This document shows positions 2,233-33,800 of a DNA stretch of 64,000 nucleotides, in pieces. The stretch is taken from sequence record PV340851.1, one strand, 5' to 3'. Under the pieces are notes generated by a model that was given only the letters and a program-made list of their open reading frames with translations, searched no databases and was not told where the DNA came from. The translations under genes were made by a program, and so were the position numbers. Position 1 is the first letter of the stretch; each line of letters starts with the position of its first letter.

Positions 2233-3210
2233 ATGAAACTCAAAGCAATCGCTGCTGCTGTCATGGCAGCACCCCTAGTGGTGGCATGTGGTTCCACCGA
2301 CCAAGCAAACGAACCTTGGAGTCTTAATGGAGCAGGTGCTACCTTCCCTGCCCCCTATTACAACTCTGTTCTAGTTGAATTCAACAAAGCAACAGGTAAT
2401 AAGGTAAACTATCAAGCAGTTGGTAGTGGAGCTGGCGTCCGTCAGTTCAAAGCAAAGACCGTTGACTTTGGTGCCAGCGATGGTGCTGTGAGTGATGCTA
2501 AGCAACCTGCTGATGGTATGGTACACATCCCCATGACTGGTGGTGCTATTGTTCCTGCTTACAACAACCCTGGTTGTGATGCTAAGATGACACAGACTGA
2601 ACTGGCTGATGTCTTCCTTGGTAAGATCACTAACTGGTCTGCCTTTGGTTGTGCTGATAAAAAGATCACAACTGTTTATCGTTCTGATGGTAGCGGAACC
2701 ACCAAAGGTTTCACTAACTCCCTGTCAGCATTCTCTCCCGAGTGGAAGAAGACTGTAGGTACTGGCAAGTCTGTTATGTGGCCTGTTGGTATTGGTGGTA
2801 AAGGTAACAGCGGTGTTGCTGCTGGTATCAAACAACTTGACGGTGCTCTTGGTTACCTGAACTATGGTTATGTAACTGGTGGTCAGTTCCAACAGGTAGC
2901 ACTACAGAATAAAGCAGGTAATTATGTCACCGCTAATGCTCAGACTTCTGCTGCTGGTCTTGACAAGATCATTCTTGATGATCAGTTGCGTGGTGCTGAC
3001 GCTAACCCCGCAGGTGAAAATGCTTATCCTATCGTCTCCCTGACTTGGATCCTTGCTTATCCTGAGTATGAGAAGAATGGTGAGGTGAAGGAGATGCTTC
3101 GCTGGATGCTGACACCTGTTCAGCAACAGAAGGCAGACTCCCTTGGTTATGTTCCTCTTCCTGAGGCATTGAGACTCAAAGCACTCGCTGCTACTGAGTC
3201 ACTGAAATGA
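2233..3210 (+). CDS. pstS: Phosphate ABC transporter substrate-binding protein PstS
   Basis: Lipobox VVAC, GAGATFPAP, YQAVGSGAG, DFGASD, RSDGSGTT, YPIVSLTWILAY. Confidence 0.97.
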   Translation: MKLKAIAAAVMAAPLVVACGSTDQANEPWSLNGAGATFPAPYYNSVLVEFNKATGNKVNYQAVGSGAGVRQFKAKTVDFGASDGAVSDAKQPADGMVHIPMTGGAIVPAYNNPGCDAKMTQTELADVFLGKITNWSAFGCADKKITTVYRSDGSGTTKGFTNSLSAFSPEWKKTVGTGKSVMWPVGIGGKGNSGVAAGIKQLDGALGYLNYGYVTGGQFQQVALQNKAGNYVTANAQTSAAGLDKIILDDQLRGADANPAGENAYPIVSLTWILAYPEYEKNGEVKEMLRWMLTPVQQQKADSLGYVPLPEALRLKALAATESLK

Positions 3211-3231
3211 AATTGAATAATTGATTTCATC

Positions 3232-3262
3232 GGCGGAGAAAAATTTTCTCCGCCATTTTTTT
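3232..3262. terminator. Hairpin between convergent pstS and gp53; likely bidirectional terminator; part of the dispersed ~65-bp repeat
   Basis: GGCGGAGAAAA-A-TTTTCTCCGCC followed by ATTTTTTT. Confidence 0.7.
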
Positions 3263-3276
3263 GTCAAAAAAGTCGA

Positions 3277-3936
3277 TCAGACTCCAGTCTTCTTAACTCT
3301 AGATGAGATAGTATCTGTGGAGTCAGCATACTTATTTGCTTTTCTAAACTCATCCTTGAACTCATCAAGGTAGGCTCCTTTTAGGATAAAGATCTCACGA
3401 CTCTGTTCATTTAGTCTCTCCTCATACTCATACACAGTGACATCAGTCACGATAGTATTAGCAGAGATCTCTTGGACTGCACCATCACGGAAGAACTTGA
3501 TGGTCTTATCTTTAAACCTTTCTGTTACAACTACCCCAGGTTCCATGATCACTTTACCATGTAGTCTTTCTTGAATTTCTGCAGACACAATCTCATACTG
3601 TTTGATCTCTGCATATGGATCAACGTATGATGCTTCCAGTCTCTTGCGTAGGATGTATGGATCTTGTGGCCAGTCGAAGGTAGGATTGATTATATTATTT
3701 GTAATTAGAATAACCCAATCCATTTTTGGGTCACCATAGAATTGATTGGCAACCATCCATGGTTGCTCGAAGTCTGAGATCTGATACTTCTTAAAGTATA
3801 CAGCATTGGAATAATACTTGTCGCTTATCTTGAAGCGACGAAAGAAATTCTTTGCCAATACAAAATCAGATTCTGAGAAAGGATAACTGATTGGTTTAGT
3901 ATCGTACTGGATGTCTGGTAGTAGTTTGAAATACAT
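3277..3936 (-). CDS. gp53: Baseplate wedge protein gp53
   Basis: MYFKLLPDIQY...KNFFRRFK, LysM-like VANQFYGDPKMDWVILITNNIINP, YEYEERLNEQSREIFILK. Confidence 0.85.
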   Translation of the reverse strand: MYFKLLPDIQYDTKPISYPFSESDFVLAKNFFRRFKISDKYYSNAVYFKKYQISDFEQPWMVANQFYGDPKMDWVILITNNIINPTFDWPQDPYILRKRLEASYVDPYAEIKQYEIVSAEIQERLHGKVIMEPGVVVTERFKDKTIKFFRDGAVQEISANTIVTDVTVYEYEERLNEQSREIFILKGAYLDEFKDEFRKANKYADSTDTISSRVKKTGV

Positions 3937-5592: not shown

Positions 5593-6030
5593 CTAGACTC
5601 CTAAGTGCTCTTCGGTGAGGATTAAAAATTTCATCTGCCTGTCCTCACAGAAGTCCTCAGCTGCGGACCACTTAGCGCGGTTCTTAGCGTAGGTTAGGAC
5701 TTCCCTCTTCCAAGAGGCAGTCTTACGTTGTGGTTTATCATTCGGTGGTTGTGTTTGTTTCTTGGGTTTAACTTCGATCAGATATTTATTAGTAGGACCT
5801 GATCGAGACTTCACTTTGATGTAAAAGTCGGGGTAGTATCTGTGTACTCTGCCATCAGTAGGACACCTATAAGGAATGATTACTTCCTCACTGCCCCACT
5901 CTACTATGCTTTGATTATGGTCACAGAAAAACATAAACTTCCTTTCCCAGAGACTTCTATAAATGATGCGGGTAGGATTGCCCTTGTACTTCTCTGGGTG
6001 ACTTGGTTTATACACTCCTGAATATGCCAT
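5593..6030 (-). CDS. gp4: Head completion nuclease gp4
   Basis: YRSLWERKFMFFCD, WGSEEVIIPY, RYYPDFYIK, LIEVKPKKQT, NRAKWSAA. Confidence 0.95.
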   Translation of the reverse strand: MAYSGVYKPSHPEKYKGNPTRIIYRSLWERKFMFFCDHNQSIVEWGSEEVIIPYRCPTDGRVHRYYPDFYIKVKSRSGPTNKYLIEVKPKKQTQPPNDKPQRKTASWKREVLTYAKNRAKWSAAEDFCEDRQMKFLILTEEHLGV

Positions 6031-6062
6031 AAATATAATTATAAACCATCACTATTATTTAG
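6029..6062. promoter_or_regulatory. Overlapping divergent late promoters for gp4 and the gp54-like gene
   Basis: ATAAATA on + at 6029-6035 and CTAAATA on - at 6062-6056 match the T4-type late promoter core TAAATA. Confidence 0.65.
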
Positions 6063-6063
6063 A

Positions 6064-6843
6064 GTGGCATCATTAGGACATTTCATTAATATGATGAACG
6101 CCCATGGCGGTTTGTCATATAGTAATAATTATGATGTTGAGTGGGTATTCCCTACGGGCACCAAGCTGCACGATAGAATGCAGGAATTTGGTATGGTTTT
6201 GGCTGCTGGTAGCACCACTCAGGTCGGTGATCAAGAACCAGTTCTTGGATTGAATAACATCTCCGAGACAGATACCAATAGAAAAGGTATGGTCCTCAAA
6301 TACTTTTGTGATGAGGCACAACTTCCTAATGTATCTGCGGCAACTGGACAAATTACTGGTAGATATTTAGGAGAGGGTCAAGTTAGTTACCCACACACTA
6401 GGGTCTTCACAGACTTCCAACTTGGATGGGTGTGTGATGCTGACATGACACCACTTAAGTTCCTTAATCTATGGTATGGTTCTATCTTCCAGGAATATGA
6501 TACTGATTTCAACGAGATAGAAATTGAACAGAACAAAGGACTACCACTGTCTACGCAGAAGTCTAGAGCTACAGGTAACAATCAAATCCTGAGAGAAAGG
6601 TCAGTTCGTCTGGCATACCCTAAAGATTATCTTGGTAAGTGTATCATTACTAAGACAGAGAGAGGTGTGAATGCTCCTAACTCTAGAGCATCCATGACCT
6701 ATACACTACTAGATGTGTATCCATATTCAATTGATTCTGTACCACTATCATACGGTGCGTCTCAAGCAACCAAAGTGACGGCGAATTTTTATTATTCCAA
6801 GCACACCGTTACGTTTAACAGTCTTAGAAATTATAAAGGATAA
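6064..6843 (+). CDS. Tail-tube-fold protein (gp54 baseplate tube initiator / gp19-like)
   Basis: CDEAQLPNVSAATG, YPHTRVFTDFQLGW, YTLLDVYPYSIDSVPLSY, KVTANFYY are gp19/gp54 family signatures; GTG start. Confidence 0.7.
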   Translation: MASLGHFINMMNAHGGLSYSNNYDVEWVFPTGTKLHDRMQEFGMVLAAGSTTQVGDQEPVLGLNNISETDTNRKGMVLKYFCDEAQLPNVSAATGQITGRYLGEGQVSYPHTRVFTDFQLGWVCDADMTPLKFLNLWYGSIFQEYDTDFNEIEIEQNKGLPLSTQKSRATGNNQILRERSVRLAYPKDYLGKCIITKTERGVNAPNSRASMTYTLLDVYPYSIDSVPLSYGASQATKVTANFYYSKHTVTFNSLRNYKG

Positions 6844-6849
6844 AATATT

Positions 6850-7566
6850 ATGGCATTACCATCCGTTGTTACCCCCACCTATGAACTTGAATTGCCTTCC
6901 ACGAAAAAGAAAATCAAGTACCGTCCCTTTCTAGTCAGGGAGGAGAAGATCCTACTGCTTGCTACCCAGAGTGAGGATCCAGAAGAAGTAAAGAGAGCAG
7001 TGAAAGATATTGTTAGTGCTTGCGTCAAGTCACGTATCAAACTGACTGAGCTCACAACATTTGATCTAGAGTATCTGTTTCTAAAGATTAGATCAGTCTC
7101 TGTTGGGGAAGAGATCCCGATGAAAGTTACCTGTCTAGATGATAATGAGACACAAGTTGATGTGACCATTGATCTAAGTGAGGTAAATGTACAGTTCCCT
7201 GAAGGACATGATCCTAAGATCATGTTGACTGATAATGTAGGTATTATCATGAAGTATCCAGGACTGGAAGAGTTTGTTGACCTGACACTTATTGGTAAGG
7301 AAATAGAAGATCCAGACACAGTATTCAATACTGTTGCTGGTTGTATTGCACAGATCTTTGAGGGTGATGAGGTGTTTGATGAAAGCACTACTACACACAA
7401 GGAGAAGGTAGAGTTTATCGAACAACTCACACAGAAACAGTTTGAATCTATTCAGAAGTTCTTTGTGACGATGCCTGTTCTCAAGCATGAGTTTAAGGTA
7501 GTCAATCCAAAGACTGGGGTCGAATCTTCTTATACCCTTGAGGGTTTGCAATCTTTTTTCGGGTAA
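6850..7566 (+). CDS. gp26: Baseplate hub subunit/assembly chaperone gp26
   Basis: PTYELELPSTKKKIKYRPFLVREEKILL, FDLEYLFLKIRSVSVGE, C-terminal LEGLQSFF. Confidence 0.92.
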   Translation: MALPSVVTPTYELELPSTKKKIKYRPFLVREEKILLLATQSEDPEEVKRAVKDIVSACVKSRIKLTELTTFDLEYLFLKIRSVSVGEEIPMKVTCLDDNETQVDVTIDLSEVNVQFPEGHDPKIMLTDNVGIIMKYPGLEEFVDLTLIGKEIEDPDTVFNTVAGCIAQIFEGDEVFDESTTTHKEKVEFIEQLTQKQFESIQKFFVTMPVLKHEFKVVNPKTGVESSYTLEGLQSFFG

Positions 7567-7568
7567 GT

Positions 7569-7742
7569 TTGTTCTATAATAGTCTAGAAAATTATTATAG
7601 GACAAACTTTGCGTTGATGCAGCACCATAAATATAGCTTGACGGAAGTTGAAGACATGATGCCATGGGAGCGAACCGTCTATGTCTCCCTGCTTAATCAG
7701 TATCTAAAAGAACTAGAAGAAAAGCAAAAGCAGAATGCCTGA
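7569..7742 (+). CDS. gp51: Baseplate hub assembly protein gp51, absent from the ORF track; possibly expressed as a -1 frameshift extension of gp26
   Basis: Frame starting TTG 7569 (ATG at 7617) reads ...SLENYYRTNFALMQHHKYSLTEVEDMMPWERTVYVSLLNQYLKE, the conserved cyanophage gp51 signature; stop TGA at 7740-7742. Confidence 0.85.
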   Translation: MFYNSLENYYRTNFALMQHHKYSLTEVEDMMPWERTVYVSLLNQYLKELEEKQKQNA

Positions 7743-10305
7743 AGTAGATCCTAAAAGGAAGAAGAAGTTACAAGAAGTCCTTGACCGTATGGAAAAGGGC
7801 TTCGATGAGAACATGCTGGATCCTTTGTTGGAGACAATTTATAATGAACCTGAAGATAAACCTCTGCCAAGTGAAGGCAAGGTAAGATATAAGAAGAAAA
7901 AATTTCAAGTCATCAAGGTAAACAATACATCTGGTGACACACTCGCTGGTCTACTTGGTAGTAAGATAGGTGAGTCATTTGGTATGGCAGCAGGTGCTAG
8001 GAGAGCATCAGCTGATAGTAAAGGCAGAGGTTTCTTCCTCAAGAAAGCATTACAGTTTCAGTTTGGTGGTGATCTAATCAATAGGACTAGAGGTACATTC
8101 TCTAAGGATCCTACTGACACACAGGACCCAGCACTTGGTAAGTCTGGTAGATTTAGTGCAGAGGTTGCACCATACCTAGATCCTGTCCAGGGTCCAGCAC
8201 CACCACCTGCAAAGGCATCTGACTTTGATGCTGCAGCAGATGAAGTCATCGATAAGTTAGATGAACTAGGTGACACAAAAGATAAAAAGGATGAGCAACT
8301 ATCTCTTGCTATTGAGATCAATCAGGATGTAAACAAGGGAGTAGCAGAGTCAGTCAAAGAAAATAATACTCTGCTCAAGAAGTCTCTCGACATTAAGAAT
8401 AGATTTCTTAGGTTCCAAAGTGATGCAGAAGATGAGAAGAAATCACAGAGAGTAGAGAAGAGAGGGGAGTTCGAGGTAGATCGATCTTCACTCACACCTG
8501 TAGATAATTCTAAGTTATTCTTCCCAGACCCAGAAGAAGAACCACAACAGAATGGGTTCATGAACTTCCTAGACTTCGGTCTAGATCTACTGGATGGTGG
8601 TAACTATTTCGGTAAGGGTGCCAGTGTAGGTAGACGTGGCATGGGTAGAGTTGTTCAACGAACAGCACTACGACTTGGTGGTAAGAAAGCAGCAAAATCT
8701 GCTATAGTTCAGGGAGGACAAGCACTTCTCAAGAGAGTAGCGTTACCTGTATTGCGTCCTATCTTCAAGCGCATTCCTATTGTTGGTGGACTCATCGACT
8801 TTGTTGTATCATTAGCACTAGGAGAACCAGTAGGCAGAGCAGCAGCGAAAGCAATTGGTGCTACATTGGGTGGTGCATTGGGCACACTGATTCCTATCCC
8901 TGGTGTCGGTACGATTGCTGGTGGTATTGTTGGTGATCTAGTTGGTGGTGCTATCTATGATGCTGTCACAGGTGGAGCACCAAAAGATCCCACAAACTCA
9001 ACACCAGAAGTAAAGGAAGCAGCAGGAGCACCAACATCATTTGCTGATCAGTCTGGTGGTCTTGGTTCACCTGATCCAGTGCCAGAGAAATTGGCATCGG
9101 GTGGTATTCTTGCGGGCGAGGCAGGACCAGAGGCAGTATTTAATTTGAACTCTGTTGTAGGTCGTAGCACTGTCAAGGCAGTGTCTAGTGTCAGCAGTTC
9201 TATCTCTGCAATACCATTCATTCTAGGTATCACAGATGATATTATCAACAGCACTCCTGGTATGGATCCATTGAAACCATTCCTCAATCAATACATGGCA
9301 CCCCTTGTTAGATTGTTTGGTATGTCTAACTTTAATACAAGAAGTTTGTTGGGTAATAGTGCTGAAAAAGTACAGTCGGAGGCAAGTAAAGGAGACGAAT
9401 TGATTCGTCAGGCAAAAGCAGGGCAGGAAACCAGTGTTCAGGCACAGGAAACTATGACAGGTGGTCCTGTCAAAGGTGTTAACATGGGTGGTGGAGAAGG
9501 TAAGACATCTGCAGCTGCTGTCTACAATTATCTCAAGTCAAAAGGACTCAGTGATATACATGCTAAGGGTATCACTGTCAACATCATGCGTGAGTCTGGA
9601 TTTAAGTTAGGAGCACACAATCCTAATGATCCTGGTGCTGGTTCGTTTGGTTTGTTCCAATGGAATGCAGGTAGAGCAGACAAAATGATGGCAGCAGTTC
9701 CTGACTGGCAGACAAACTGGCAGGGACAAATTGACTATGCTCTCGGTGAAGATCATGGTCCTACATATTTGTCTACACAGTTTACTACTGCAGGTGATGC
9801 TGCATATGATTGGATGAAGTATTGGGAGAGACCAGCTGAATCTATCCAAGCACAGTATACGCCGCAGGTATATCAGGGACAGATCAATGCAATGGGTCTG
9901 CATGAAGGCATGCCAGAACCACAAGGGCAACCACGCGGCACACCAGACGTACCACCTGCTGATTCAGATGCCAACGGTGGACACGATACTGACAACCCAG
10001 GTGGCAATCTACTGTTCAGTCCACCAGTTAGTAAGGAAGAGATGAACAGTGTTGGTCCAGGTCCACAAGGATCTAGAGCATCCATCGTTGCTAACATGCC
10101 TAGCTCTCTAGCATCAGCAGCAAACAATGGTTACGTTACTGTTCAACCTATCATTGTTAAGGTGGGCAGTGGTAATCAGGTGGTTGGTTACAGAAAGAAC
10201 ATTGACACTGGAGAAGATGGTGGTGTTGCTAGGTTCTATTACAACACACAAGGTGGTCGCACATCACTTGAGCAGTTGAAGGAGGCAAGATTACAACTGA
10301 ACTGA
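7735..10305 (+). CDS. Tape-measure/hub-like virion protein with a phage tail lysozyme domain
   Basis: Gly/Ala-rich amphipathic segment (GGLIDFVVSLALG...GGALG...); C-terminal GITVNIMRESG...GSFGLFQWN...QGQIDYAL lysozyme-like motif; follows gp26/gp51. Confidence 0.7.
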   Translation: MPEVDPKRKKKLQEVLDRMEKGFDENMLDPLLETIYNEPEDKPLPSEGKVRYKKKKFQVIKVNNTSGDTLAGLLGSKIGESFGMAAGARRASADSKGRGFFLKKALQFQFGGDLINRTRGTFSKDPTDTQDPALGKSGRFSAEVAPYLDPVQGPAPPPAKASDFDAAADEVIDKLDELGDTKDKKDEQLSLAIEINQDVNKGVAESVKENNTLLKKSLDIKNRFLRFQSDAEDEKKSQRVEKRGEFEVDRSSLTPVDNSKLFFPDPEEEPQQNGFMNFLDFGLDLLDGGNYFGKGASVGRRGMGRVVQRTALRLGGKKAAKSAIVQGGQALLKRVALPVLRPIFKRIPIVGGLIDFVVSLALGEPVGRAAAKAIGATLGGALGTLIPIPGVGTIAGGIVGDLVGGAIYDAVTGGAPKDPTNSTPEVKEAAGAPTSFADQSGGLGSPDPVPEKLASGGILAGEAGPEAVFNLNSVVGRSTVKAVSSVSSSISAIPFILGITDDIINSTPGMDPLKPFLNQYMAPLVRLFGMSNFNTRSLLGNSAEKVQSEASKGDELIRQAKAGQETSVQAQETMTGGPVKGVNMGGGEGKTSAAAVYNYLKSKGLSDIHAKGITVNIMRESGFKLGAHNPNDPGAGSFGLFQWNAGRADKMMAAVPDWQTNWQGQIDYALGEDHGPTYLSTQFTTAGDAAYDWMKYWERPAESIQAQYTPQVYQGQINAMGLHEGMPEPQGQPRGTPDVPPADSDANGGHDTDNPGGNLLFSPPVSKEEMNSVGPGPQGSRASIVANMPSSLASAANNGYVTVQPIIVKVGSGNQVVGYRKNIDTGEDGGVARFYYNTQGGRTSLEQLKEARLQLN

Positions 10306-10394: not shown

Positions 10395-12476
10395 ATGGCA
10401 GCAGGCACAGTTAGTTACCAACAACCATCCTATGGCAATCTTGCTGGCGCAGTAGGGGAGAAGATAGGTAGTGCCATTAATATGGCAGCGACCTCTAGGA
10501 AGAGGCGCGAAGATGAAATTAAAGAACTACAAAACAAACCAAACAAAACCGACGAAGAAGAACTAAGACTATCAGATCTCCTAGAAGAGAAGCAGAATAG
10601 AAAGAGAGGTAGTCTGTTTGGTAAAGCATTAGGTGCTGAGTTTGGTGGCGATAGGATGCGAAGAACCATGGGGTTCTTCCAAACTAGTCCAGAAGATAAG
10701 AATGATCCTGCATTAACGAAAGCACAGAGGTTTGAGGCATCGTTAGCAGCACCACCAAAGCAAGGTGTATACCAACAGGAACTAGATCTAGGTAGTGCAG
10801 GATATAAAGAACAAACTGCACTAGAAAAACTAACAAGCAGCATCGCACTCAAGTTCAAAGAGATTGGTGCTAAGATTGAGGGACTGAGAAGACAGGAAGA
10901 GTCAGACCCTACACCTACTGTTGTTGTTAAACTTGCCGAGAATGTCAACGGTCTGAAGTCATACTTCACTAAGAACAATAAGATTCAGGAAGAATCTAAT
11001 AAAATATCTAACGATCAGTTAACAGAACAGATCAAGGCAAGAGACAGAGCACAGGCAGATGCTATCGAGACTACAGGTGAAGCAAGAGATAGACAAGCAG
11101 GTGGCGTAGGATTTGATAATGAAAGACAAAGAGGCAAGGGTCCCATGGGCATCCTTGGTGATCTTCTTGGTGGACTAGGCAACATGTTTGGTGGTCGCCG
11201 TGGTGGTAGACGTGGTGGTAGCAGAAATAGAATGCCACGCATGTCTAAAGGTAGGATGTATTCCAATCCTATCGGACCACAACCGATGGGATCCAAAACA
11301 CCATGGGCAAGAGCAAGAGGTGGTGCTGGCATCGGTGGGTTCGCTCCTCGTATGCCATCCAGAGTGATGCCCAGGAAGTTTGCATCTGGTGGTGTTCTAG
11401 ACAATCCTACTGACATTAGTGGTGCTGGTGATCAGGCAGTCATTCCTAAAGCAAACCTGACTAATGCAGTCCAGACTAACCCAGAGAACGCGAAGAAAGC
11501 GACACCATTTGCTAAGGCATTGCAGCTACCAACAGTAGCAGCAGGTTCACTCCTACTTTCTACTATCACCAACGTGGTGAAGAACATGGGTGGACTCAGC
11601 AGGATGTTCATGCCTATGATTAGTAAGTTTCTTGCTCCTGCTGCTACAGCATTCGGTCTGCCTGGTGGACTTATCGCAGGCATGCTGCTAGGTGGTGCTC
11701 CTGCTCAGGCACATCCAGGTCCAGAACCACATGGTCCTGATGGTAAACCACAGACTCAGACTAGTGTAAAATCAAGAACAGGTGGTGGTGCTATGGGATT
11801 CATGGCACCTGGCATGGTGACAGGTGGTGGATCTGTTGATGGTTATCAAATCACATCTGGTTTTGGTCGTCGTACTTCTCCTGGTGGTGTTGGTTCTACT
11901 AATCACTTGGGTGTTGACTACGGAACACCACAAGGCACACCTCTATCAACAAAGAGAGCGGGTAGAGTTACCAATGTCACCATGCCTGCTATAGGTAACA
12001 ACGGAGAGGTTCATGTCATTCATGACGATGGAACCGAGGCAAGATACCTGCACCTAAGTAAGGTGGCAGTGTCTAAAGGTATGCAAGTTGTTCCAGGATC
12101 ATTGCTAGGTGAAACTGGTGGTCAACCTGGCACTCCAGGCGCTGGTCCTACTACAGGTCCACACCTACACTTTGAATACTATCCTAGTGCAGGGTCTGGT
12201 CCTGTTGATGGATCTGGTGTTGCATCATCTGTCTTTAGTGTTGGTGGACAAGTTACAACTACTGGTGCTACTCCATCTGCAACTTCAGGTACTCCACTAG
12301 CGGAGACTCCAGCAGCAGCGGCAGTTCCAACAGGAGGTGCAGCACCCCCGATGGTACTGGACTTCAGCAACGGTAAGTTTAACTTAGTACCTGCACCTCC
12401 TGTACAAGATACTACTGTATCTCCATTCTCTATTACTAATCTAGAGAGTCCTAACAGTCTAGCACCTTCATTCTAA
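10395..12476 (+). CDS. Tape-measure-like virion protein paralog with an M23 peptidase domain
   Basis: ITSGFGRR...NHLGVDYG (HxxxD), YLHLS, TGPHLHFE (HxH); its N-terminal motif is shared with the 7735 ORF. Confidence 0.8.
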   Translation: MAAGTVSYQQPSYGNLAGAVGEKIGSAINMAATSRKRREDEIKELQNKPNKTDEEELRLSDLLEEKQNRKRGSLFGKALGAEFGGDRMRRTMGFFQTSPEDKNDPALTKAQRFEASLAAPPKQGVYQQELDLGSAGYKEQTALEKLTSSIALKFKEIGAKIEGLRRQEESDPTPTVVVKLAENVNGLKSYFTKNNKIQEESNKISNDQLTEQIKARDRAQADAIETTGEARDRQAGGVGFDNERQRGKGPMGILGDLLGGLGNMFGGRRGGRRGGSRNRMPRMSKGRMYSNPIGPQPMGSKTPWARARGGAGIGGFAPRMPSRVMPRKFASGGVLDNPTDISGAGDQAVIPKANLTNAVQTNPENAKKATPFAKALQLPTVAAGSLLLSTITNVVKNMGGLSRMFMPMISKFLAPAATAFGLPGGLIAGMLLGGAPAQAHPGPEPHGPDGKPQTQTSVKSRTGGGAMGFMAPGMVTGGGSVDGYQITSGFGRRTSPGGVGSTNHLGVDYGTPQGTPLSTKRAGRVTNVTMPAIGNNGEVHVIHDDGTEARYLHLSKVAVSKGMQVVPGSLLGETGGQPGTPGAGPTTGPHLHFEYYPSAGSGPVDGSGVASSVFSVGGQVTTTGATPSATSGTPLAETPAAAAVPTGGAAPPMVLDFSNGKFNLVPAPPVQDTTVSPFSITNLESPNSLAPSF

Positions 12477-21890: not shown

Positions 21891-24800
21891 ATGCCTCTAA
21901 CTAGACTTGATAACCTGTATTCAAGTAAGACTGGTAAGTACCTTTACGTATCACCAGATGACTTCAATGCTACTGATGAGCTAGACAACAGGGGCAACAG
22001 TCCTCTACGTCCTTTTAAGACAATCCAGAGAGCGTTTATCGAAGTATCGCGCTATTCGTATCTCCCAGGATCGAATAACGATAGATTCGACCAGTTCAGC
22101 ATCATGCTGATGCCTGGTAACCACTATATTGACAACCGCCCTGGTCTTGTCACCGAAAATGTCGTTGAGGCACGATATTTCGATGCTGGTAACCTAGTTA
22201 CAGCAAACAAGCAAGAGATTGTTGACTATGCAGTCGCACAGGTTCCTGTAGAACACCCTGATTTCTATTACCCAGGAGATCCTCAAACAGGTGAATGGTC
22301 GCGATATAAAGATGCATATCGCATGATTCAACTGAATCGCGACGAGATTATTGATCGTGCGATTGCAGAAGTAACAGTTGATCACCCCGATTTCTATTTT
22401 CCTGGCGATCCTCAGTCCGATGATGGTTCTAGATATGCTGATGCATATCGTTTGATCCAGAAAAACAAGGATCTGATTGCACAGGATGCGTTCGACTTCA
22501 TGGACGCAAATAATGCACCTAGTGTCACTCCTCCTAACTACAGCACTTCTTGCAAGCGTGACATCGTTCGCATGATCGATGGTCTGTCTCTGGACGTTTT
22601 CCAGGGCGGTGGTAATGTCTACACTAGACGCTTTATCTCAACCTATTTCAACGATGCAGGTAACGATTGGATCGGTGAGAAGAAGTATTTCACACCTACA
22701 GATGCTGATTATAATCCAACAACTGGCGAAATCGTTGTAACCTTTAATCAGAATCATTCCCTATCTGTTGGTCAGAAGATCTATATCAAGGAAGGCGGTC
22801 TGTCCTTCACTTGTGATATGGACGACAATGATTCTGTTAAGTCCTATCCTCGTCGTGGAGAAGATCCATTTGCAGTAAAAGGTTTCACAGTTACTGGAAC
22901 TACTTCTAACACTATCACCTTTAATGCAGGTGTAGCAGGTGTTAACAAGACTTGGACACCTACTTTTGTTGACTATAACTCAACAACTGGCGACATGATC
23001 ATGACCTTAGGTCAGCATGGTCTTGCTGCTGGTAAGCATATTGTAATTGAAGACAATTCACTTACATTTACATGTGATCAGGATAGTTATAACACTCAGC
23101 ACACCTATCCACGTCCTGGTACTGATCCATATGCTGGCAAATCTATTGAGATTGTCAGTGTAAGTAAGTCGGATCACACTGCAATTGGTGCAAACTATAA
23201 TGCAGCAACTGGTTCTCTAGTTCTTGAAGTCACTAGTCACGGTTTCGCTAATGGTGATTACATCAAAGTTAGCAATGATGCACTGGGATTCACATGTGAT
23301 CTAGATGGCAATACTGCCACTAAGACATATCCTAGACAGGATTATGACTACCCCTCTGGTCGTTGGATGGAGATCAGCAATGTAACTGCTAACACATTTG
23401 AGATTAATGTTGGACCCTCGTCGTACACAGGAAATCACACCTTTGTTAGCTGTGTCGCTAATGGTATTCAGCGCCAAACTGGTAACGTTCTTGTTAATGT
23501 TGGTAATGCTGGTTCTGCGGTTGGTAGTATTCATAACTTCGTCTCTGCAACTGCTGGTGCTATCAAGTTTGAACCACTTGCTCCTCACACCTTCGTTAGT
23601 GCAGTAAATGATGCTATCGAGAGCGATACTGTAGGTCTTCGTGGTGAAGAATCTTCTTCCTTGACTGCTTTCTCTAAAGCAATCGAGTACATTAAGGCAG
23701 CAATTACTAATAACTACACCTCTACATCTGCTCCTGGTACTGAATATCAAGATCTAACAGTCACCCCTGATCCTCTCACTAGTAACAACCAAGATCCTAC
23801 ATCTTGTAGTGACGTACAGACATACATTCAGAACCTGTATTCGGCAATAGAAAGTGTCTTTAATGACACTGATCTTCTTACAAGAAGTGGTAATTTCCAA
23901 CTTAGTAACGCTCTACCAACAGAAACTTTCTCCGAAATTATTGGACCAGGAGAGACTAAGTGTAAGCGTGACGTTGGTCAATTCGTTGACTATATCGGTC
24001 TTGACGTTGCACAAGCAGGTGGTAATGTCTACACAAGAAAACTACTACAGAACTATTTTGACGCAACTGGTAACAACTGGGTCACAAATGGACTGCAAGG
24101 TGAAGTAAATGAGTCTCGTACTGTCTTCAATAAGGCAGTCGAACAGATGAATAAAGCAGTTACTAACCAACTGCATACCTATAAGGACACTACAATCACC
24201 CCAGGTGATGCTATCTACGGCAATAGCAACAACCCACAAGAAAATCTACTGTCTGGTAACCCTGCAGCATGTGCTGACGTTCAGACACTGATTACCAACC
24301 TTGGCGCTATTGTTGATACAATCATCAGTGATGAGAATCTACAGAACCTCCCAGAAGAAACTGTATCTGATATTCAGAATGCTGGCGAAGCAAAGTGTAA
24401 GCGCGATGCTAGTATTATTGTTGATTCTATCATCTCCGACCTTAAGTCTGATGGTAACGCTAACATTATTACTGCTGCCAAGGCATACTTTGATCGCTTT
24501 GGTGTACCTATCACCAATGGTTTGGTAGGCGAAACCAATGAGTCAATCACAGTCTTTAATGCTATTGCTACTCATGCCAAACTTGCTGTTTCTAACAGAC
24601 TTCTGGCAAAAGATCTGACTATCTCCTTTGGTCCTGCATATGCTAATGCAAATACCCCAGACATTGAGTACAATGGATCTGGTAACCCAGCAGTATGTCA
24701 AGATGTCCAGGCAACTATTGATACCCTAATCGGTATTCTAACTGATACGATCTCAGCAGGTAACCTAGACAACCTTGCTCAGATTAAGATCACTGGTGTT

Positions 24801-27800
24801 CTTCCTTCTTTCAACTATAACAGAGCACTAGAAGAGTGGCAGGATAACAGCATCCTAGACCTCAGCAATCCTGATAACGTTCTTCACAAGTTTAACGCTG
24901 AATCAGGTGGTGCTATCGTTCCTAGAGGTTGTTCACTAATCGGTTATGACCTCAGAAGAACAGTTATTCGTCCTCTATATGTTCCCGATCCTGCTGATAC
25001 TTCTCAACCAAGAACTTCTATCTTCAACCTAACTGGTGGTTGCTATCTGTGGCAGTTCACTATCAAGGATGGTGACCTCTCTGCACAATCTCCTCTGTAT
25101 GATGCATCTGCTGGTGTTGGTAAGGTATACTACCAGAAAGGTTCTACTTCTCTGGCAATTCCTGAGTATTCTCACCACAAAATCTGCATCATGGAGTATG
25201 CAGACAAGACAGATCTTGACAACTACTATGACAAGGTAGGTAAGGCATTCCAGCAGTTCCAACCAACTATTGATGATGGCGATCTAGAGACTCTGGTCCA
25301 AGAAAATAGAATTGTTGGTCCTCTGTCTGACTCCAGAACTATTGAGAGTATCAAGATTGATGACTTTGCTACATTTGAAGGTAGCATTAATGGCACTGTA
25401 ACTATCAGCAATGTTGCTAATGCCGATAAACTGAGAATTGGTTTTGAAGTTACTACTACCGATGGTAGTGTAGTTGTTCCTCCCAACACTCGCGTTACCA
25501 ACATTTCTGGTACAACTGTTACTGTATCTAACGCAATTAGTGGATCTGGTATCAAGTCCTTTAAGGGATCCTTCGGTTATGTTTGTGCGACTGTAACTAC
25601 TAAGATCGACCATGGTTATTTCGAGGGTCAGTATGTTGCTATCCTTAACTCTGGTCTAAATGATGAAGTTAACGGTACATTTAAGATTACTGAGATCGAT
25701 CAGGTTAATCCTAAGGTCTTTAAGTATGAAGTATACGGTCAAACCGCAGCATCTCTATCTCTAGTTTCTGGTCAGACATATTTGTCTGGTGAAGTCGGCG
25801 GAGTTTCTCCCAACGCGGTAGTTCTTGCGGAAATTGACTCTGTTGAGTCCGCATCTCCGTATGTTTTCAACTGCTCTATCCGCTCTACTTGGGGTCAGTG
25901 CGGTATGTGGGCAGATGGATCCAAGGCAACTGGATTCAAGTCAATGGTCGTGGCTCAATATACGGGCGTATCGTTGCAGAAAGACGATCGTGCATACATT
26001 CGCTACGATAGATTTACTAACACATGGAACCAAGCATCACTAACTGATGCATTTGCTACCGTTCCTTATCACACCAAGGGTGATGCATACTGGAAGGATG
26101 ATTGGAGAAACTTCCACATCCGTGCTTCCGATGACTCCTTCATCCAGTGCGTCTCGGTCTTTGCTGTTGGTTTCTTCGATCACTTCCTGATGGAGTCAGG
26201 TGGTGACATGTCCATTACCAACTCTAACTCCAACTTCGGTAATACATCACTTCACTCTATTGGTTACAAAGGTTTCTCATTCAACCAGGACAAGGGTGGA
26301 TACGTTACAGACATTATTCCACCTGGCACCATTACTGCAAGCGATGTAGAAATTAACCAGTGGTACACACTTGACGTTGATGCATCTAACTCTAGAACTA
26401 ACCACACCAAGGTATATCTTGCAGGCGATGCTATCAATGACCCTGAAAAGCGTCCTGCATCTTCTATCAATGGATACAGAATTGGTGCTAAGTCTGGTGA
26501 AGAACTGCTAGTTAATCTTGATCGTTATCCTTCTGAACCTACTGGTCCTGCTGAGTTCTCTGTAGAACTAGAACCAAGTGGATTCAAGACATGGAGCGTT
26601 GGTATTGAGACTCTAACTCCATCTTCTGCTAACGTTAACAACAGCGCACAGGATGCTGCTAACAGAATTGAAGATAACAAAGAGTTTATTCAATCTGAAG
26701 GTTATCAGTATATCATTAATAAGAATCCTGAACTGTTGACAAAAGCAGGCATTACTATTGGTAAGTGTGAAAGAGATATCGGATACTTTGTTGATGCTGT
26801 TGTCAGTGACTTGCGTCTGACAGGTAATATTCAAAGTATTCAGGCAGCAGAAGGATATTATATTGCAGGTGAACTAGCATATGTTGCAGGCGAACTAAAC
26901 GAAACTATTGATGCCCTTGATTATGTCAAGGACTTGATGATTGCCGCAATGCGTAACTTTGACTTTGTTGTTAGAGGTTGCGAAGTCAATCAGAATACAG
27001 CAATTGTCAATGTTCCTACAACACAGGGCATTGTAATTGGCATGACTGTCCAAGAATTCAGTTCTGCTGACTTTACTGGTTCGTCATTGAATGGTGGTGC
27101 AGTTCCAAACACAACTAACATTCCTATCAATACTGTTGTTAAGCGTATCATTAGCGATACTCAGATTGAACTAGGAACTAGCGGTTCATTCCTTAACTCA
27201 GGATTCGTTCAAAATGCACTAGGCGATTCCCCAAGCGCACTGCTATACTTCTCTATGGCTGGTGGTCAGTGGACTAACGTTACTCCTAGCGTTGATCTTA
27301 CAATCACCCCATACAATGAGGTTGATGGTAATGGTGATCCACTGCCTGAGTGTGTCGGTATTGCCACCCTGATCGAGGGTTACTTCGAGCAGGTCTTCCT
27401 GGTCCTCAACAACGGTTACACCGCTCTGGGAGGCACAGAGGTCGATGCATACAATGCTATCACCGACAATGCTCGCTTCATTGCTGCTGAGTCTGTCTAC
27501 AGAATTGCTAACGATGCAACATATTCAGGCACTAAGTTGGGTCAAGGTCTCCTAGCATCGACTGGTGAGACTATCGAAGATGCATGTGTAGATGACGTTG
27601 AGACCGTCCTGAAAGAACTTGCATGGGATATCAAGTTTGGTGGTAACAGCAGAACATGGGATGCTGCAAATCTGTATAAGACATCTGCATCTGTTATTGG
27701 TGAAGAAACAGAATCTATTGCTGTATTCAACATTGCAAGAGATCTGGCAATCGAGGCGATGCGTCAGCAGACGATTGCAATCCAAGGTACTCATGGTCTG

Positions 27801-30800
27801 ACTCAGATTATTGATTCTCAAGTTCCACCTGACTATGATCAGGACGGCAACCTAGAGAACCCACTCTGTGCAGGTATTGCTAACCAGATTACTACATCTA
27901 TTGCACTGATCACCACTGGTATCAACAATGGTAATCTGGGCAATAAGACAATGCCTGTAATCAGTAGTGTTACTAAGGTAGAACCTACTCTAAATGCTGC
28001 TCTGCTTGCATCTAGAGCAACCTTGTTTAGTCTTGCTACTGGTACACTATTTGGTAATCCTAACCCACATGACATTGAGACTGGTACTGCAGTAAGATTG
28101 GTTCCTAAACCAAAAGCAGGTACAAATCCTGACAAGCGTGTAGTAAGACTGCCCAAGGGATTTGATACTAACACCAAGTATTATGTCATTGCTCCAGGTA
28201 GAAATCTCTACCCAGAGAACTTTGCACAGAACAGCACAGTTCTTACTGCAACTGAAGCAAGTGGTACATCATTCACTACACCTGATGCTACTCGCGCAAC
28301 AGCTGCTGGTACATATCGTTCTGTGATTGCACAACCTAAGATTGATACTAACCAAACTCCAGAAGTTGCACTAGCATCTGGTACTGGACTTAAGTTTGAT
28401 ATCGTAGTCAATGCTGATGGTACTATTCAGGCAATTACAGGTAACAATGGTGATTCTAAGATTGTTGATCCTGGTTCTAGATATGAAGCAGGTGATATTG
28501 TAGTTGTTACTGACGCTCAGATTGGTAACAGTGGTGCTGCTAACATTGAGATTGAGGTTACTGCAGTCTCTACTGCTACCTACCCAGGTGCATTTGATGG
28601 TCAAGAGATGAACAAGTTGATGCTTGCTACATCTCCTGAGAATGCTGCAGCAGGTATCTACATGTACTCTCCCGAGACTGACTCGGTTGACCCTGACGTT
28701 GAGATCGAACTCCAGCAATATGTACTGGATGGTAAGTATGACCTACACAAGTATAAGTGTGATGTTGTTGGTGCTTCTGAAATTGAGTCCTCTGTTGCTC
28801 ATATCTTCGACGTTCCTGCTCCTAATACTACACCACAGGTTGTATTCGTTAGAGTTGCTGATGACATCCAAGGATCTAGTCTCCCACAACTCAGCGGCAG
28901 TTCTTCTAACATCTCCGATAGCACATTCTATTATGTACGTTATGTAAGCAATAAGCGTTTCACTCTACACACATCTGCATCTGATGCAGAGTCTGGTGAT
29001 AGAGCACTTACATTCGTCAGTGGTACTGGTTTAGACTTCTATGTCTATGCTAACAAGCGTACATCTCCACTGAAGTTTGATGCTGAATATAGTTCTTCTA
29101 TCAATACTACTGGTCTCTGGTATCTGAATGTCAAGGATCAGTCTAGCATTGGTGGTGCTAACTACGATCGTTACAGCATCCTGTCCAGATTCCACGGCGG
29201 TGCTGAACTAGTAACAGACTATCAGTTTAAGACTGATCCTACTCTTGATACTAGATATCTGCGTGTTAAAGATTCTAGAGAGAAGGAAGATAGAGTCTAC
29301 AGATTGCGTTATGTTGTTCCTTCTTATCTGGAAACGGTTCGTGATCCTCTCAATGGTTTCGTTATTAGAACTAGAACTGATGATAAGCGTCGTCTTGTTC
29401 CTCAGAAAGTTCTACTCAAACCAGTTGGTGGTAACTCTATTACAACTGCTAAGTTCTACAACCCTGCAGGTGCAACTGAGAGACTTGGTGCTACCAAGGC
29501 AGCTCTTGCAGCAGGTGATAGCAACAGACCTTTGGATCCAGCAGTTCTAGATCTGCTCCCCGAGCAGCAGAACCTGTATGATCCATATGTTTCACCTAAG
29601 CAGATCGAATTTGATTCTAAGATTGCATCTACTATTCAATCTGCTAGAGAAGTTATTCCTGATGGTCAGACTGATACCTTCCTTGAACTGACACTATTTG
29701 ACCACACAATTATCAATGAAACAGTAAGGAATGAAATCTTTACTATTGCATCTGTAAACAACCTGCAAGGAGGATTCCTCACTGCAAACTCCACACAGAG
29801 CAATGACAGTAACAAGATCTTCTGGGATACTATCTCTGGTGACAACCCCTCTACTGGTTATGGTTGGTTGCAGGCAGAAGTCAATGACATTGATGGTCCT
29901 GCTGCTGGTTACACTCTGGTCATCAAGAATGCAGTTGGTACACTACAATTCAAAGCAGGCACCACAGTTCGCTTTACCCAAGGCAATGTAAGTGTTGATC
30001 TAGTTTCTAACCCCAACTCTTTCGGTGATGTAGCTGGTCGCGATAAAGCACTCAGAACTAACTATCTGTATAGAGTAGAAGGTTCTAACGTCTATTCAAT
30101 CGCTCCTGGTGATACTGTATCTGACGATGAGGGTAACTCTTACTATGTTTCTTCTATCGATGATCAAGGTGACTTTGAAGATACTTTCTATATCTTCGAC
30201 ATTGACACCCTACAAGAGCGTATTCCACAACAGCAAGATGGTATCTACTATCTAACCTGTATTCGTGGTAACATCTCACCTTATCCTACTGGATCTGGTG
30301 TCGGTGAGAACTTCAGAAACTTCAAGTTCTCTCAACCTATCTCTCAACTCTATCCTATCAACTACAAGAACGATCCTCTGTGGTTCCAAGTTGATGGATC
30401 ATCTGGAGTTAGAGACACTGCTATCCTTGACGTTCCTGCTACATTCTCTGCAGCAGATAACTTCGTTCATGGTCTAGTTACTGTCAACGATGCTAAGGGC
30501 AGTGAGACTAGAGAGATGGTCAATGACATGATCCAGAACTCTATGCTGGATCAGTATACTTACACCAACAGCGTAACGTATACTAACCCCAACACTGGCA
30601 TCTCTACTATCCTAGACAACAGAATCCAGGCACAAGAAGGTAACGCAACCTCTGGTTCTGAGGATAGAATGATTCCTATCTCTGGTGACTCACAGTTTGT
30701 CACCGAGCGTAAGTTGTACGTCGAACTTAGAAGACCATCCATCGCAAGATCTGGTAACCATACATTTGAGTATCTTGGATTCGGTCCTGGTAACTACTCA

Positions 30801-33800
30801 ACTGGTTTCCCACTGCGTCAGGAAGTGGTCCTAACAGACAAACAGGACTTCTATGCTCAGTCTAAGCGTGAGGACGGTGGTATCGTCTTCTACACTGGTC
30901 TGAACTCTAACGGTGACCTCTACATTGGTAACAAGAAAGTCAACGCTATCACTGGTGAAGAGACATTCCTAGAGAGTGCAACACTAATTGATTCTGAGGA
31001 CGAGGATGATGATATCGGTAACCTCGTTACAACGTTCGACTCCCCAGTCACGTTTAACAACACTATCACAGTTGCAGGTAAGGCAACATTTGCTGGTCCT
31101 CTAGAGATTAACGTTGATCCACCTGAAGGTGATGCAGTTAGAATTGCATCTAACGTTCTTGGTGGTAGTGAAGACATCACACTATTCCGTGGTTCGTGGC
31201 CTGATCCTACTGATGGTGATATTGTTCTTGCTGAGAACACTATTCGTGCAGCATTGTATAGACTAAATGCTCGCCGTGAAATCAACACGGTAGCAGGTCA
31301 GTCTTACAGTTTCAGAACACACTACACTGGTGGTGCTCCTTCTAACATTACTCCATGGCAAACCGCAGATAGATTTACTGCTGCTCAAGAAGTAACATAC
31401 AGTGGCACTGCTAATGTAGAATTTGGTGACATCCTATTCAAGGGAGATTCTGTTGGTCTCAGTGGTTCTTTGGGTTGGATCTACACTAACGCATACACCA
31501 CATTTGAGTCTTCAGTCTTCAATATTACAACTGATGGTACTGCAAAACTAACGGTTACTTTGGTTGCTGGTCAGACCAACGCTGGCAATAATATTGAATC
31601 TGGTACATTCGTTAGAATCAGAAACTTTAGTAACACCGATGTCAATGGTACGTGGCCAGTTGTTGCTGCTGGATTCACACCTAGTGGTACTCAATTCCAG
31701 ATTCTGACCGACACTGTATTTGATACAGGTCAAACCTTCACCTGGGCGAATGAAGCAACAGGTGCTGATATTCTGCGTTCTACTTCTAACTGGAAAGAAT
31801 TTGGTACGATTGGTTCTGAATCTATCAGAACATGGACCGAGCAGCGTGGTGACTACAGAGTTGGTATTAACACCATTGCAAGAACTGATCACAATGCAGT
31901 TACTACTGCTAACGTTGATGAGTTTACCGAACCAAGAGCAAACCTTGATGTTGTAGGTACTGCATTCATCTCTGGTCAGACTCTAGTTACATACGATCAA
32001 GCAGGTAATGCTGATAATCGTTATGATGATAACTCGATGAACTCCGACATTAGAGAGGCACTAACTGGTGCTGATCTAACTGCCAAGGGATTCGTTCCTC
32101 AGGACAATGCACTGTTGGTTGGTGGTGATAGTAACAACCTTGATCAACCTGCAACTCTACGTGTTGCAACTAAGGACATTACTACTACTCCAGGTAACAC
32201 CTATCAGACAGGTGGTAGAGTTGGTATTAACACCACTCTAGGACTTACTGCTGGCGCTGAACTAGATCGCAACTTGGTTGTTGTTGGTGATGGTAGAATT
32301 ACTGGCAACTTTAAGATCGAAGATGACATCAGTGTTGATGGTGGTGATATTAACACCACATCTAATACCTTCAACCTACTCAACCAGAACGCTAACATCG
32401 TTAGCATGTTGGGTGATGCTCAGCAACTGAACTTTGCTAACAATACTACAGGTGATCAAAGCATTGCATTTGGTAACTCCTGCAGTAACCAAGTTCTTAA
32501 CATTGGTACTGTTGCACAAAACACACTGCTGAATATTCACGGTGGTTCTAACAATGCACTGGTTGACATTGCAACTGTCAGCGAGGAACCAGCAAACTCT
32601 TGTCAGGTTGCAATTGGTGGTGCATATGGCAACACCGACTCCAGTACAGTTATTGGTACATACCAGACAATTACTGCTGGTTCTCTACAGATTGGTAATG
32701 GCATCGCAGATGGAACAGGTAACGCTATTCTCTTCTCTAAGACAAGAAAAGTTACTCTATTTTCTGATGACAGAACAACAACTGTTGAAGCATTTACCAG
32801 TGCTAATAATCTACTGTTGGGTTCTCTTGGTGGTAGCTCCACTATTAGAAACTCTCTGGGTGTTGATGCATCCCTGAGAGTTGAGGGTAACATTAGACTG
32901 AATGGTGGTACTAACGCTGGTATCATTGAGATTCAAAGAGGCAGATTCAGCACTGCTGTAGTTGCACATGATGTTGGCAGTCTCGATGTTCCTAACATTG
33001 ACTTCTATAAGTATCAGTCTACTGGCAGACAGATCGTTACTTCAGGTAACGCACTCTGGGGTGGTCTTAGCGACCTCGCAGGTGGTGGTCAGATCTCTGG
33101 ATTTGATAATGTTAATTCATCTGATCCTAGCAGTCTACGTATTCCTAACTCCTACACCTTTGTTCAGGCAAGTGGTGGTACTGGTGAAGGCGCAATCTTC
33201 GATGTGTTGGTTGCATTCGATGGAACAGTTACTCTAACAATCACCAGCACTGGTAGTGGATATGCTAACGACGATGTTCTAACTCTGTCGGATGGTGATC
33301 TTGGTGGCGGTGGTGCTCCTGATATCACATTGCAGGTTAATGGTGTTAATGATCCAGGTGATGTATACTTCCTGCCTATCAGCACACCTGCTGCAACTGA
33401 CTTCTTTATCGGTGATCTGTTGCTACTTGATCGTGGCAATGCTGCTACACCTGATTCTGTTATACCTGATGGTGGCACAGCACTCACTGGTCTTCGTGAT
33501 CAAGCGAAGTCTGAGATCGTTCGTGTTGTTGGTCTAACTAACCTCACCAATCCTAATGATCCTAAAGGTTTCAGACTTGCGGTTCAAAGAGCACAAGAAG
33601 GCACAGGTAACTTTAACTCTGGTACTGGTTCATATGACGGTTGGACGGATCACCCAGGTGGTCAGTTTGGTACTGTCATTGCTAAACTTATCAAGCAATC
33701 TGCAGCGTCCTTCATCACTGGTACTGACCAGAATCTAGATGGTATTCTATCTGAATCTGAGAAGGGTGTTGGTATTAATAACAGCACTGCTAATGTAAGA

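Follow-up and report, generated by a model that had tools for sequence, protein, structure and literature searches.

Is gp51 of the T4-like cyanophages a gene of its own, or is it a part of gp26 that is reached by a change of reading frame? The question is raised by a locus of Synechococcus phage Sf-CH3, a T4-like cyanomyovirus with the isolation host WH8102 (PV340851.1), of which a stretch of 64,000 nucleotides (nt), here called the window, was analysed. In the GenBank record a 'baseplate hub subunit' at 6850–7566, which is gp26, is followed by a 'baseplate hub assembly catalyst' of 41 amino acids (aa) at 7617–7742 and a 'tail lysozyme domain-containing protein' at 7735–10305. Slippage is not annotated in PV340851.1, and the source paper of the phage does not mention it (PMC12284385). 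An earlier note on this DNA had predicted that gp26 and gp51 are fused by a −1 programmed ribosomal frameshift, and this prediction is supported by a fixed slippery heptamer, a constant −1 register, the lack of a conserved start codon and the architecture of T4 gp51. On the comparative evidence presented here we regard it as highly likely that a conserved −1 programmed frameshift makes two products, gp26 (238 aa) and a gp26–gp51 form of 297 aa. In Sf-CH3 and most distant T4 relatives sampled, 'gp51' would thus very probably be a tail added to gp26 by a −1 slip and not a separate gene.

The zero-frame product gp26 is a full-length match to its family. It is recognised by PF12322 (1.8e-69; 234 bits against a curated cut-off of 24.5; residues 9–237 covered) and by positions 5–232 of phrog_150 (1.4e-76), and its AlphaFold2 model has a pLDDT (predicted local distance difference test) of 90.5. 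The −1-frame extension matches phrog_634, the 'baseplate hub assembly catalyst' (5.1e-27), and in addition positions 240–281 of phrog_150. Since gp26 and the extension match different parts of this one profile, some members of phrog_150 hold both parts in a single chain. Gp26 and the extension were always compared as separate pieces. In-frame fusions of the two were not found among the close relatives, the best 120 matches all having 237–241 aa. On the + strand neither a promoter nor a terminator was found between gp26 and the extension, and no sigma-70-type promoter-like site is present on this strand within 6000–8000. Two antisense open reading frames (ORFs) at 7174–7665 and 6879–7430 are without family matches and were dismissed.

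The 3′ end of gp26 reads TCT TTT TTC GGG TAA and includes the heptamer T TTT TTC (Table 1). In the −1 frame a stop codon at 7539–7541 is followed by an open frame from 7542 to the TGA at 7740–7742, and therefore a shift is possible only within 7542–7563. A third of this overlap of the two frames is occupied by the heptamer. The motif T TTT TTY in register is found a single time among the 18,762 codons of those ORFs of the window that comprise at least 150 aa, and all X XXY YYZ heptamers pooled amount to 0.15% per codon in the long ORFs of the window. Every coordinate that the earlier note had given for the ORF end, for the position and register of the heptamer and for the extent of the −1 frame was found again on the sequence. 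Its lengths of 297 aa with and 238 aa without the shift agree with simple arithmetic, the trans-frame product consisting of 237 + 60 residues.

Conservation was followed in 80 loci from IMG/VR (gp26 identity 51–84%) and in 83 further analysable loci with identities down to 28%. Clustering of the 164 analysable loci at 90, 70 and 50% identity gives 79, 48 and 31 clusters, respectively, and a close set is made up of 40 clusters at 90% aa identity. In addition, 16 phage records from GenBank were examined around gp26, and the extension was detected in related loci with a hidden Markov model. Either T TTT TTC or T TTT TTT stands in register near the end of gp26 in 163 of the 164 loci, and in the same 163 the extension lies in the −1 frame with no stop codon between it and the heptamer. 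Both features whose conservation across T4-like genomes the earlier note had left to be checked, the heptamer and the −1 register, thus hold, and the intervening stops that it had considered do not occur. The exception, L100, has the same junction as its sister L099 apart from a T-run of another length, by which the register of L100 is changed (both are Stenotrophomonas phage genomes from IMG/VR); this difference is probably a homopolymer miscall in sequencing at the slippery site. Named phages with the −1 extension are Caulobacter phage Cr30, Sinorhizobium phage phiN3, Stenotrophomonas phage Mendera, Aeromonas phage Aeh1, Rhizobium phage IG49 and Citrobacter phage Ci1, besides a KVP40-like vibriophage and a Desulfovibrio phage.

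The conservation extends to single nucleotides. NNT TTT TTC is found in 40 of 40 close clusters with zero entropy at all seven bases of the heptamer, whereas third codon positions near it have entropies of 0.3–1.95 bits. The codon 5′ of the heptamer varies (AAT, AGT, GAT, TCT, GCT, CAT or ACT, coding for N, S, D, A, H or T), but its last base is always T. Elsewhere in gp26 Phe-Phe is coded by TTC TTT in 19 of 35 cases and by TTT TTC in merely 5. Heptamer and register are thus conserved beyond the need of the protein sequence, as the invariant wobble T of a variable preceding codon makes plain. The stop codon of gp26 is located 0, 1, 2, 3 or 8 codons past the heptamer, depending on the relative; since its position varies and the heptamer does not, the heptamer and not the stop is the fixed element.

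Purifying selection in the −1 frame begins at the heptamer itself. Among the close clusters the entropy at the three codon positions is 0.68/0.48/1.23 for codons 4–20 of the extension and 0.61/0.33/1.22 for codons 21–48, and selection is the same in both parts although all of codons 4–20 lie 5′ of the commonest first ATG. Alignment and codon-position entropy thus bear out the earlier observation of conserved residues 5′ of ATG 7617. The first −1 codon after the slip encodes Arg (CGN) in 40 of 40 clusters, where the overlapping zero-frame residue is G, A, E or V; the residue of T4 gp51 aligned to this Arg is Lys. Invariant columns of the extension in the close set include L10, N17, F18, L20, H24, K25 and P36. 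In three loci (L106, L132 and L151) the zero frame continues for 8 codons past the heptamer, and even so the heptamer marks the beginning of the conserved −1 motif, which excludes termination and re-initiation in these loci.

This start of the coding signal bears directly on the alternative that gp51 is an independent small gene. Ribosomes would then stop at TAA 7564–7566 and re-initiate at TTG 7569 or ATG 7617, a free peptide of 41–57 aa would be made and the T-run would be kept for the Phe-Phe of gp26. The GenBank annotation agrees with such a gene, many relatives have a start-type codon at the gp26 stop or adjoining it, and a TGATG or TAATG overlap would likewise yield a −1 register. However, the codon equivalent to TTG 7569 is TTG in 7, ATG in 12, CTC in 20 and CTA in 1 of the 40 clusters, that is, no start codon in 21 of them, and in Sf-CH3 itself no sequence resembling a ribosome binding site is found within 5–10 nt of 7569, in line with the earlier note. 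The first start-type codon is located at position 3, 5, 10, 16, 20 or 21 of the extension in the close clusters and as far as position 28 or 34 in distant loci; a conserved initiation codon is absent across the loci compared, and the mini-ORF starts chosen by gene callers are scattered over many positions. A start further upstream is impossible in many loci because a −1 stop codon directly precedes the heptamer. Desulfovibrio phage 7757 (L096, OR395405.1, an unannotated genome) has the heptamer, and its whole −1 extension ORF is without ATG, GTG or TTG. Selection in the −1 frame, moreover, sets in at the heptamer and thus 5′ of any start, in the three loci with a late stop 8 codons before the end of the zero frame. 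For Phe-Phe as such, neither the invariant wobble T nor the order TTT-then-TTC is needed, and T4 gp26 has Phe-Phe yet codes it by TTC TTT. An independent gene 51 is thus an improbable explanation of the locus.

A comparison with T4 (MZ375356.1) and RB69 (NC_004928.1) shows what the two predicted products correspond to. A review counts T4 gp26 and gp51 among the hub assembly chaperones; it treats gp51 as essential for assembly, with a function not known, and as absent from the finished particle (PMC3004832). Sf-CH3 gp26 aligns with T4 gp26 over the full length in hhalign (95% probability). The comparison of a shallow cyanophage gp26 profile with the single T4 gp51 sequence by hhalign was uninformative, and the relation was settled by Pfam and PHROG profiles: residues 1–201 of gp51 represent a complete PF12322 domain (7.7e-55 in T4, 1.2e-57 in RB69), the same domain as in gp26. 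Residues 200–246 of T4 gp51 align with residues 2–49 of the Sf-CH3 −1 reading from the heptamer, and the end of PF12322 (201) and the start of the extension homology therefore adjoin at the equivalent of the slip site. Since the PF12322 domain and the homologue of the extension are contiguous in gp51, T4 encodes the predicted trans-frame architecture as an ordinary gene, whereas in Sf-CH3 this architecture (PF12322, then a C-terminal segment of about 48 aa) is present by trans-frame reading only. Sf-CH3 gp26 is thus a full-length homologue of T4 gp26, and in its order of domains the predicted trans-frame product agrees with T4 gp51. The two forms are separate paralogous genes in T4, about 20% identical, but in Sf-CH3 they would come from one gene and a predicted recoding event. 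T4 genes 26 and 51 are divergently transcribed, with 51-27-28-29 in one direction. T4 and RB69 gp26 have both retained a C-terminal Gly-Leu-x-x-Phe-Phe with Phe-Phe coded TTC TTT, and a slippery site is present neither in gp26 of these two phages nor at the junction in T4 gp51. The profile phrog_1140, which stands for the gp28 baseplate hub distal subunit, is matched weakly (E about 1e-3) by T4 and RB69 gp26 (L091:2752-3375 and L092:2983-3606) as well, and going by this similarity gp28 may be a third distant paralogue.

Sullivan et al. found the gp51 of cyanophages and marine vibriophages to be without about 200 N-terminal residues and to have about 20% of the T4 length, and they scored gp51 as missing in Aeh1 (PMC3037559). 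Both the short gp51 and the 'missing' one would be explained by the frameshift. In Aeh1 (L085 ~3178-3387, AY266303.2) T TTT TTC stands at the end of gp26, together with an unannotated −1 ORF of 69 codons that is homologous to the extension. The short length could also be taken for decay, the extension being an unexpressed remnant of a full-length gene 51 or a product of chance. However, the ORF is intact, 914 representative clusters (50% identity) match the extension at E ≤ 0.001, and the 40 close clusters show strong third-position-biased variation together with several invariant columns. These conservation data effectively refute decay and leave it with next to no probability.

The RNA around the heptamer concerns the manner of slippage. 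A hairpin begins 5 nt past the heptamer in Sf-CH3 (minimum free energy −20.7 kcal/mol; z = −6.9; 0 of 200 shuffles as stable), and it gives the most stable 50-nt segment when compared with all such segments in gp26. Other cyanophage clades possess different, clade-specific hairpins at the same position. Upstream of the heptamer the purine run GAGGG is a possible stimulator, although its conservation is confounded with that of Glu-Gly codons (GAG in 24 of 40 clusters, GGN in 40 of 40). The same fused protein would result from transcriptional slippage if RNA polymerase added one U in the T6 run, so that some mRNAs carried both parts in one frame. A homopolymer of 6 to 8 T is present in all relatives, and the protein product would be identical to that of ribosomal slippage. 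Efficient polymerase slippage usually needs runs of about 8–9 or longer, though, and here the run is most often T6 (68 of 83 distant loci, 40 of 40 close clusters). In addition, the motif ends in C or T, which is expected of Z in a ribosomal heptamer, and a stable hairpin at a distance of 5 nt suits a ribosomal stimulator. Slippage by the polymerase is accordingly quite improbable, and ribosomal frameshifting is the reading followed below.

Several observations weigh against this reading. All support for the frameshift is comparative: the anatomy of the sequence, its conservation, the −1 coding signal and the collinearity with T4 gp51 are direct observations on genomes. An ATG or TTG is located at the gp26 stop or adjoins it in 19 of 40 cyanophage clusters, and TGATG or TAATG is found there in Cr30, phiN3, Mendera and the KVP40-like phage; coupled re-initiation could therefore yield some free extension peptide in those phages. 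Independent initiation may thus add some free peptide where an ATG lies at the stop, but it cannot explain the conservation at the nucleotide level or the coding signal 5′ of any start. Regarding the RNA structure, z falls below −2 in only 37% of 111 loci, many distant clades are without structure, and covariation of the hairpin within clades is weak (7 of 500 and 279 of 500 shuffles). In view of the weak covariation, the clade-specific hairpins and the distant clades without one, we regard the hairpin as a putative local stimulator and not as a feature of the family. In Ackermannviridae and Vibrio phage D528 the −1 extension exists without a canonical heptamer. Homology of gp26 to tail assembly chaperones was found neither with Pfam, which gives PF12322 only, nor by a sequence search of the PDB, and a Foldseek search of the AlphaFold2 model against the PDB returned nothing with E below 0.9, the HK97 chaperone 2ob9 having E = 5.9.

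The loci of Ackermannviridae and D528 (L087, L088, L090 and L180-L199) deserve a description of their own. A conserved −1 ORF of 57–66 codons homologous to the extension follows gp26, with 53–58 codons past the gp26 stop, and it is unannotated in Maynard and XDRKpn-1. The −1 frame opens just 10–22 nt before the gp26 stop, and an ATG at the stop is found in one subclade only.

From these comparisons we infer the slippage itself, its rate and the binding partners of both products as follows. A minority of the ribosomes translating gp26 would slip back by one base at T TTT TTC, where two Phe tRNAs would re-pair in the −1 frame, probably aided by the hairpin downstream. The shifted ribosomes would then read 60 further codons to the TGA. 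Two proteins with identical first 237 residues would result, gp26 as the major form and the 297-aa form with the architecture of T4 gp51. By analogy with T4 gp26/gp51 and lambda G/GT, the pair probably chaperones the assembly of the baseplate hub and the tape-measure complex, and the extension may supply, in sub-stoichiometric amounts, an additional binding function. In T4 and RB69 the two forms would be carried as diverged paralogous genes from which the slippery site was lost.

A conserved frameshift in the tail genes of long-tailed phages, with the lambda chaperones G and GT, was reportedly described by Xu, Hendrix and Duda in 2004, and the earlier note had considered gp26 and gp26–gp51 as the equivalents of G and GT. 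As an analogy this stands. Like G/GT, the locus is predicted from its sequence to yield two products of different length that share their N-terminus, through a −1 slip close to the 3′ end of the upstream gene; they are encoded between a gene of the tube type and a long gene resembling tape measures, although the tape-measure match is weak here. The T4 homologues are assembly chaperones, and T4 gp51 is not in the finished particle (PMC3004832). Unlike G, gp26 is far larger (238 aa with a PF12322 fold) and the extension is short (60 aa), and the T4 homologues work in baseplate hub assembly; binding to tube or tape measure is conceivable by analogy. The homology to chaperones that an equivalence by descent would entail was looked for and not found, and a fold search of BFVD returned only members of the gp26/gp51 family, from many large myoviruses. 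The pair thus resembles G/GT in its presumed way of working, and membership in the lambda G/GT family is not supported.

Two further systems can be compared. Tail chaperone frameshifts exist also in the contractile-tailed phages P2 (E/E+E′) and Mu, which have simple baseplates. As in these phages, a −1 frameshift would take place in a myovirus tail-assembly gene upstream of the tape-measure gene; the protein family is a different one, and the gp26 family belongs to the complex hubs of the T4 type. In dnaX of E. coli (gamma/tau) the shifted product is the shorter one. The cyanophage site shares with dnaX a heptamer of the homopolymer type followed by a hairpin, and perhaps also a Shine-Dalgarno-like element further upstream, which in our case coincides with the Glu-Gly codons, but the predicted shifted product is here the longer one.

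Table 1 Features of the gp26/gp51 locus in the analysed window of PV340851.1
Feature	Position	Strand	Basis
Tail-tube-fold gene, upstream neighbour	6064-6843 (GenBank start 6091)	+	PF23849 Phage_TTP_2 1.2e-55; phrog_45 tail tube
gp26, zero-frame product, 238 aa, baseplate hub assembly chaperone, PF12322 family	6850-7566	+	Pfam/PHROG profiles
GAGGG, Shine-Dalgarno-like purine run, 9 nt 5′ of the heptamer	7540-7544	+	read from sequence
Slippery heptamer T TTT TTC, X XXY YYZ register with gp26	7554-7560	+	read from sequence, conserved
−1-frame extension ('gp51'), 60 codons after the predicted slip, TGA 7740-7742	7560-7742	+	phrog_634 and phrog_150 matches
gp26 zero-frame stop TAA, one sense codon past the heptamer	7564-7566	+	read from sequence
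Hairpin, 18-bp stem (7566-7583 with 7591-7608), 7-nt loop, candidate frameshift stimulator	7566-7608	+	folding
856-aa tail protein with tail-lysozyme domain, downstream neighbour	7735-10305	+	PF18013 1.1e-17; phrog_5453 full length

The gene order that the earlier note had named, tube-fold gene, gp26, gp51 and a tape-measure-like gene, is borne out on its upstream side, where PF23849 identifies the tube fold; relatives label this gene as a gp54-type baseplate tail tube initiator or tube monomer. On the downstream side the 856-aa protein, whose gene, beginning with an ATG, shares its first 8 nt with the end of the extension, matches tape-measure phrogs weakly (5.5e-7 and 1.4e-4) and in the lysozyme region only. 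Among the relatives examined outside T4/RB69 and the Ackermannviridae/D528 group, the order tube-fold gene, gp26, extension and long tail protein is kept in cyanophages, KVP40-like phages, Aeh1, Ci1 and Mendera, and Cr30, phiN3 and IG49 show the same order with one or two small ORFs inserted. A tape-measure-like gene is matched better in Cr30 and phiN3, but it is located two genes (Cr30) or one gene (phiN3) past the extension.

Other genes of the window may be mentioned briefly. The 856-aa protein (7735-10305) and the product of 10395-12476 on the + strand are adjacent large paralogues, both of phrog_5453, the former with a tail lysozyme domain (PF18013) and the latter with an M23 peptidase domain; either of them may be the tape measure. 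An ORF of 4,323 aa at 21891-34862 (+) has as its sole Pfam match PF00502 (Phycobilisome protein; residues 1584-1634; 6.7e-7, above the curated cut-off). At 5593-6030 on the − strand a gp4-type head closure protein is encoded that carries a TnsA-like endonuclease N-terminal domain (PF08722, 5e-23).

The arrangement with a predicted frameshift is seen in Kyanoviridae, in KVP40-like and Aeh1-like Straboviridae and in T4-like phages of rhizobia, Caulobacter, Stenotrophomonas and Desulfovibrio. In the ocean the family is very abundant, with at least 7,933 gp26 clusters (90% identity) and 914 extension clusters (50% identity). None of the 16 GenBank phage records examined has a slippage annotation, and full-text literature searches gave no description of a gp26/gp51 frameshift, although an earlier mention in subscription journals is possible. 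We lean slightly towards the view that the −1 frameshift is ancestral to the whole T4-like superfamily, that PF12322 represents a second, non-homologous class of frameshift-regulated tail or hub chaperones and that T4 genes 26 and 51 are a 'hard-wired' duplication. If this is true, the superfamily would offer a natural comparison between control of a protein ratio by recoding and control by two genes.

T4 is the reference phage for contractile tails, and to our knowledge its relatives have been thought to be without the near-universal tail-chaperone frameshift. The finding would fill this gap in the general rule. Besides accounting for the cyanophage and marine vibriophage 'gp51' with its fifth of the T4 length and for its 'absence' in Aeh1 (PMC3037559), it would set right the annotation in hundreds of T4-like genomes and in many thousands of metagenomic genes, and T4 gp26 and gp51 would become the short and the long form of one chaperone.

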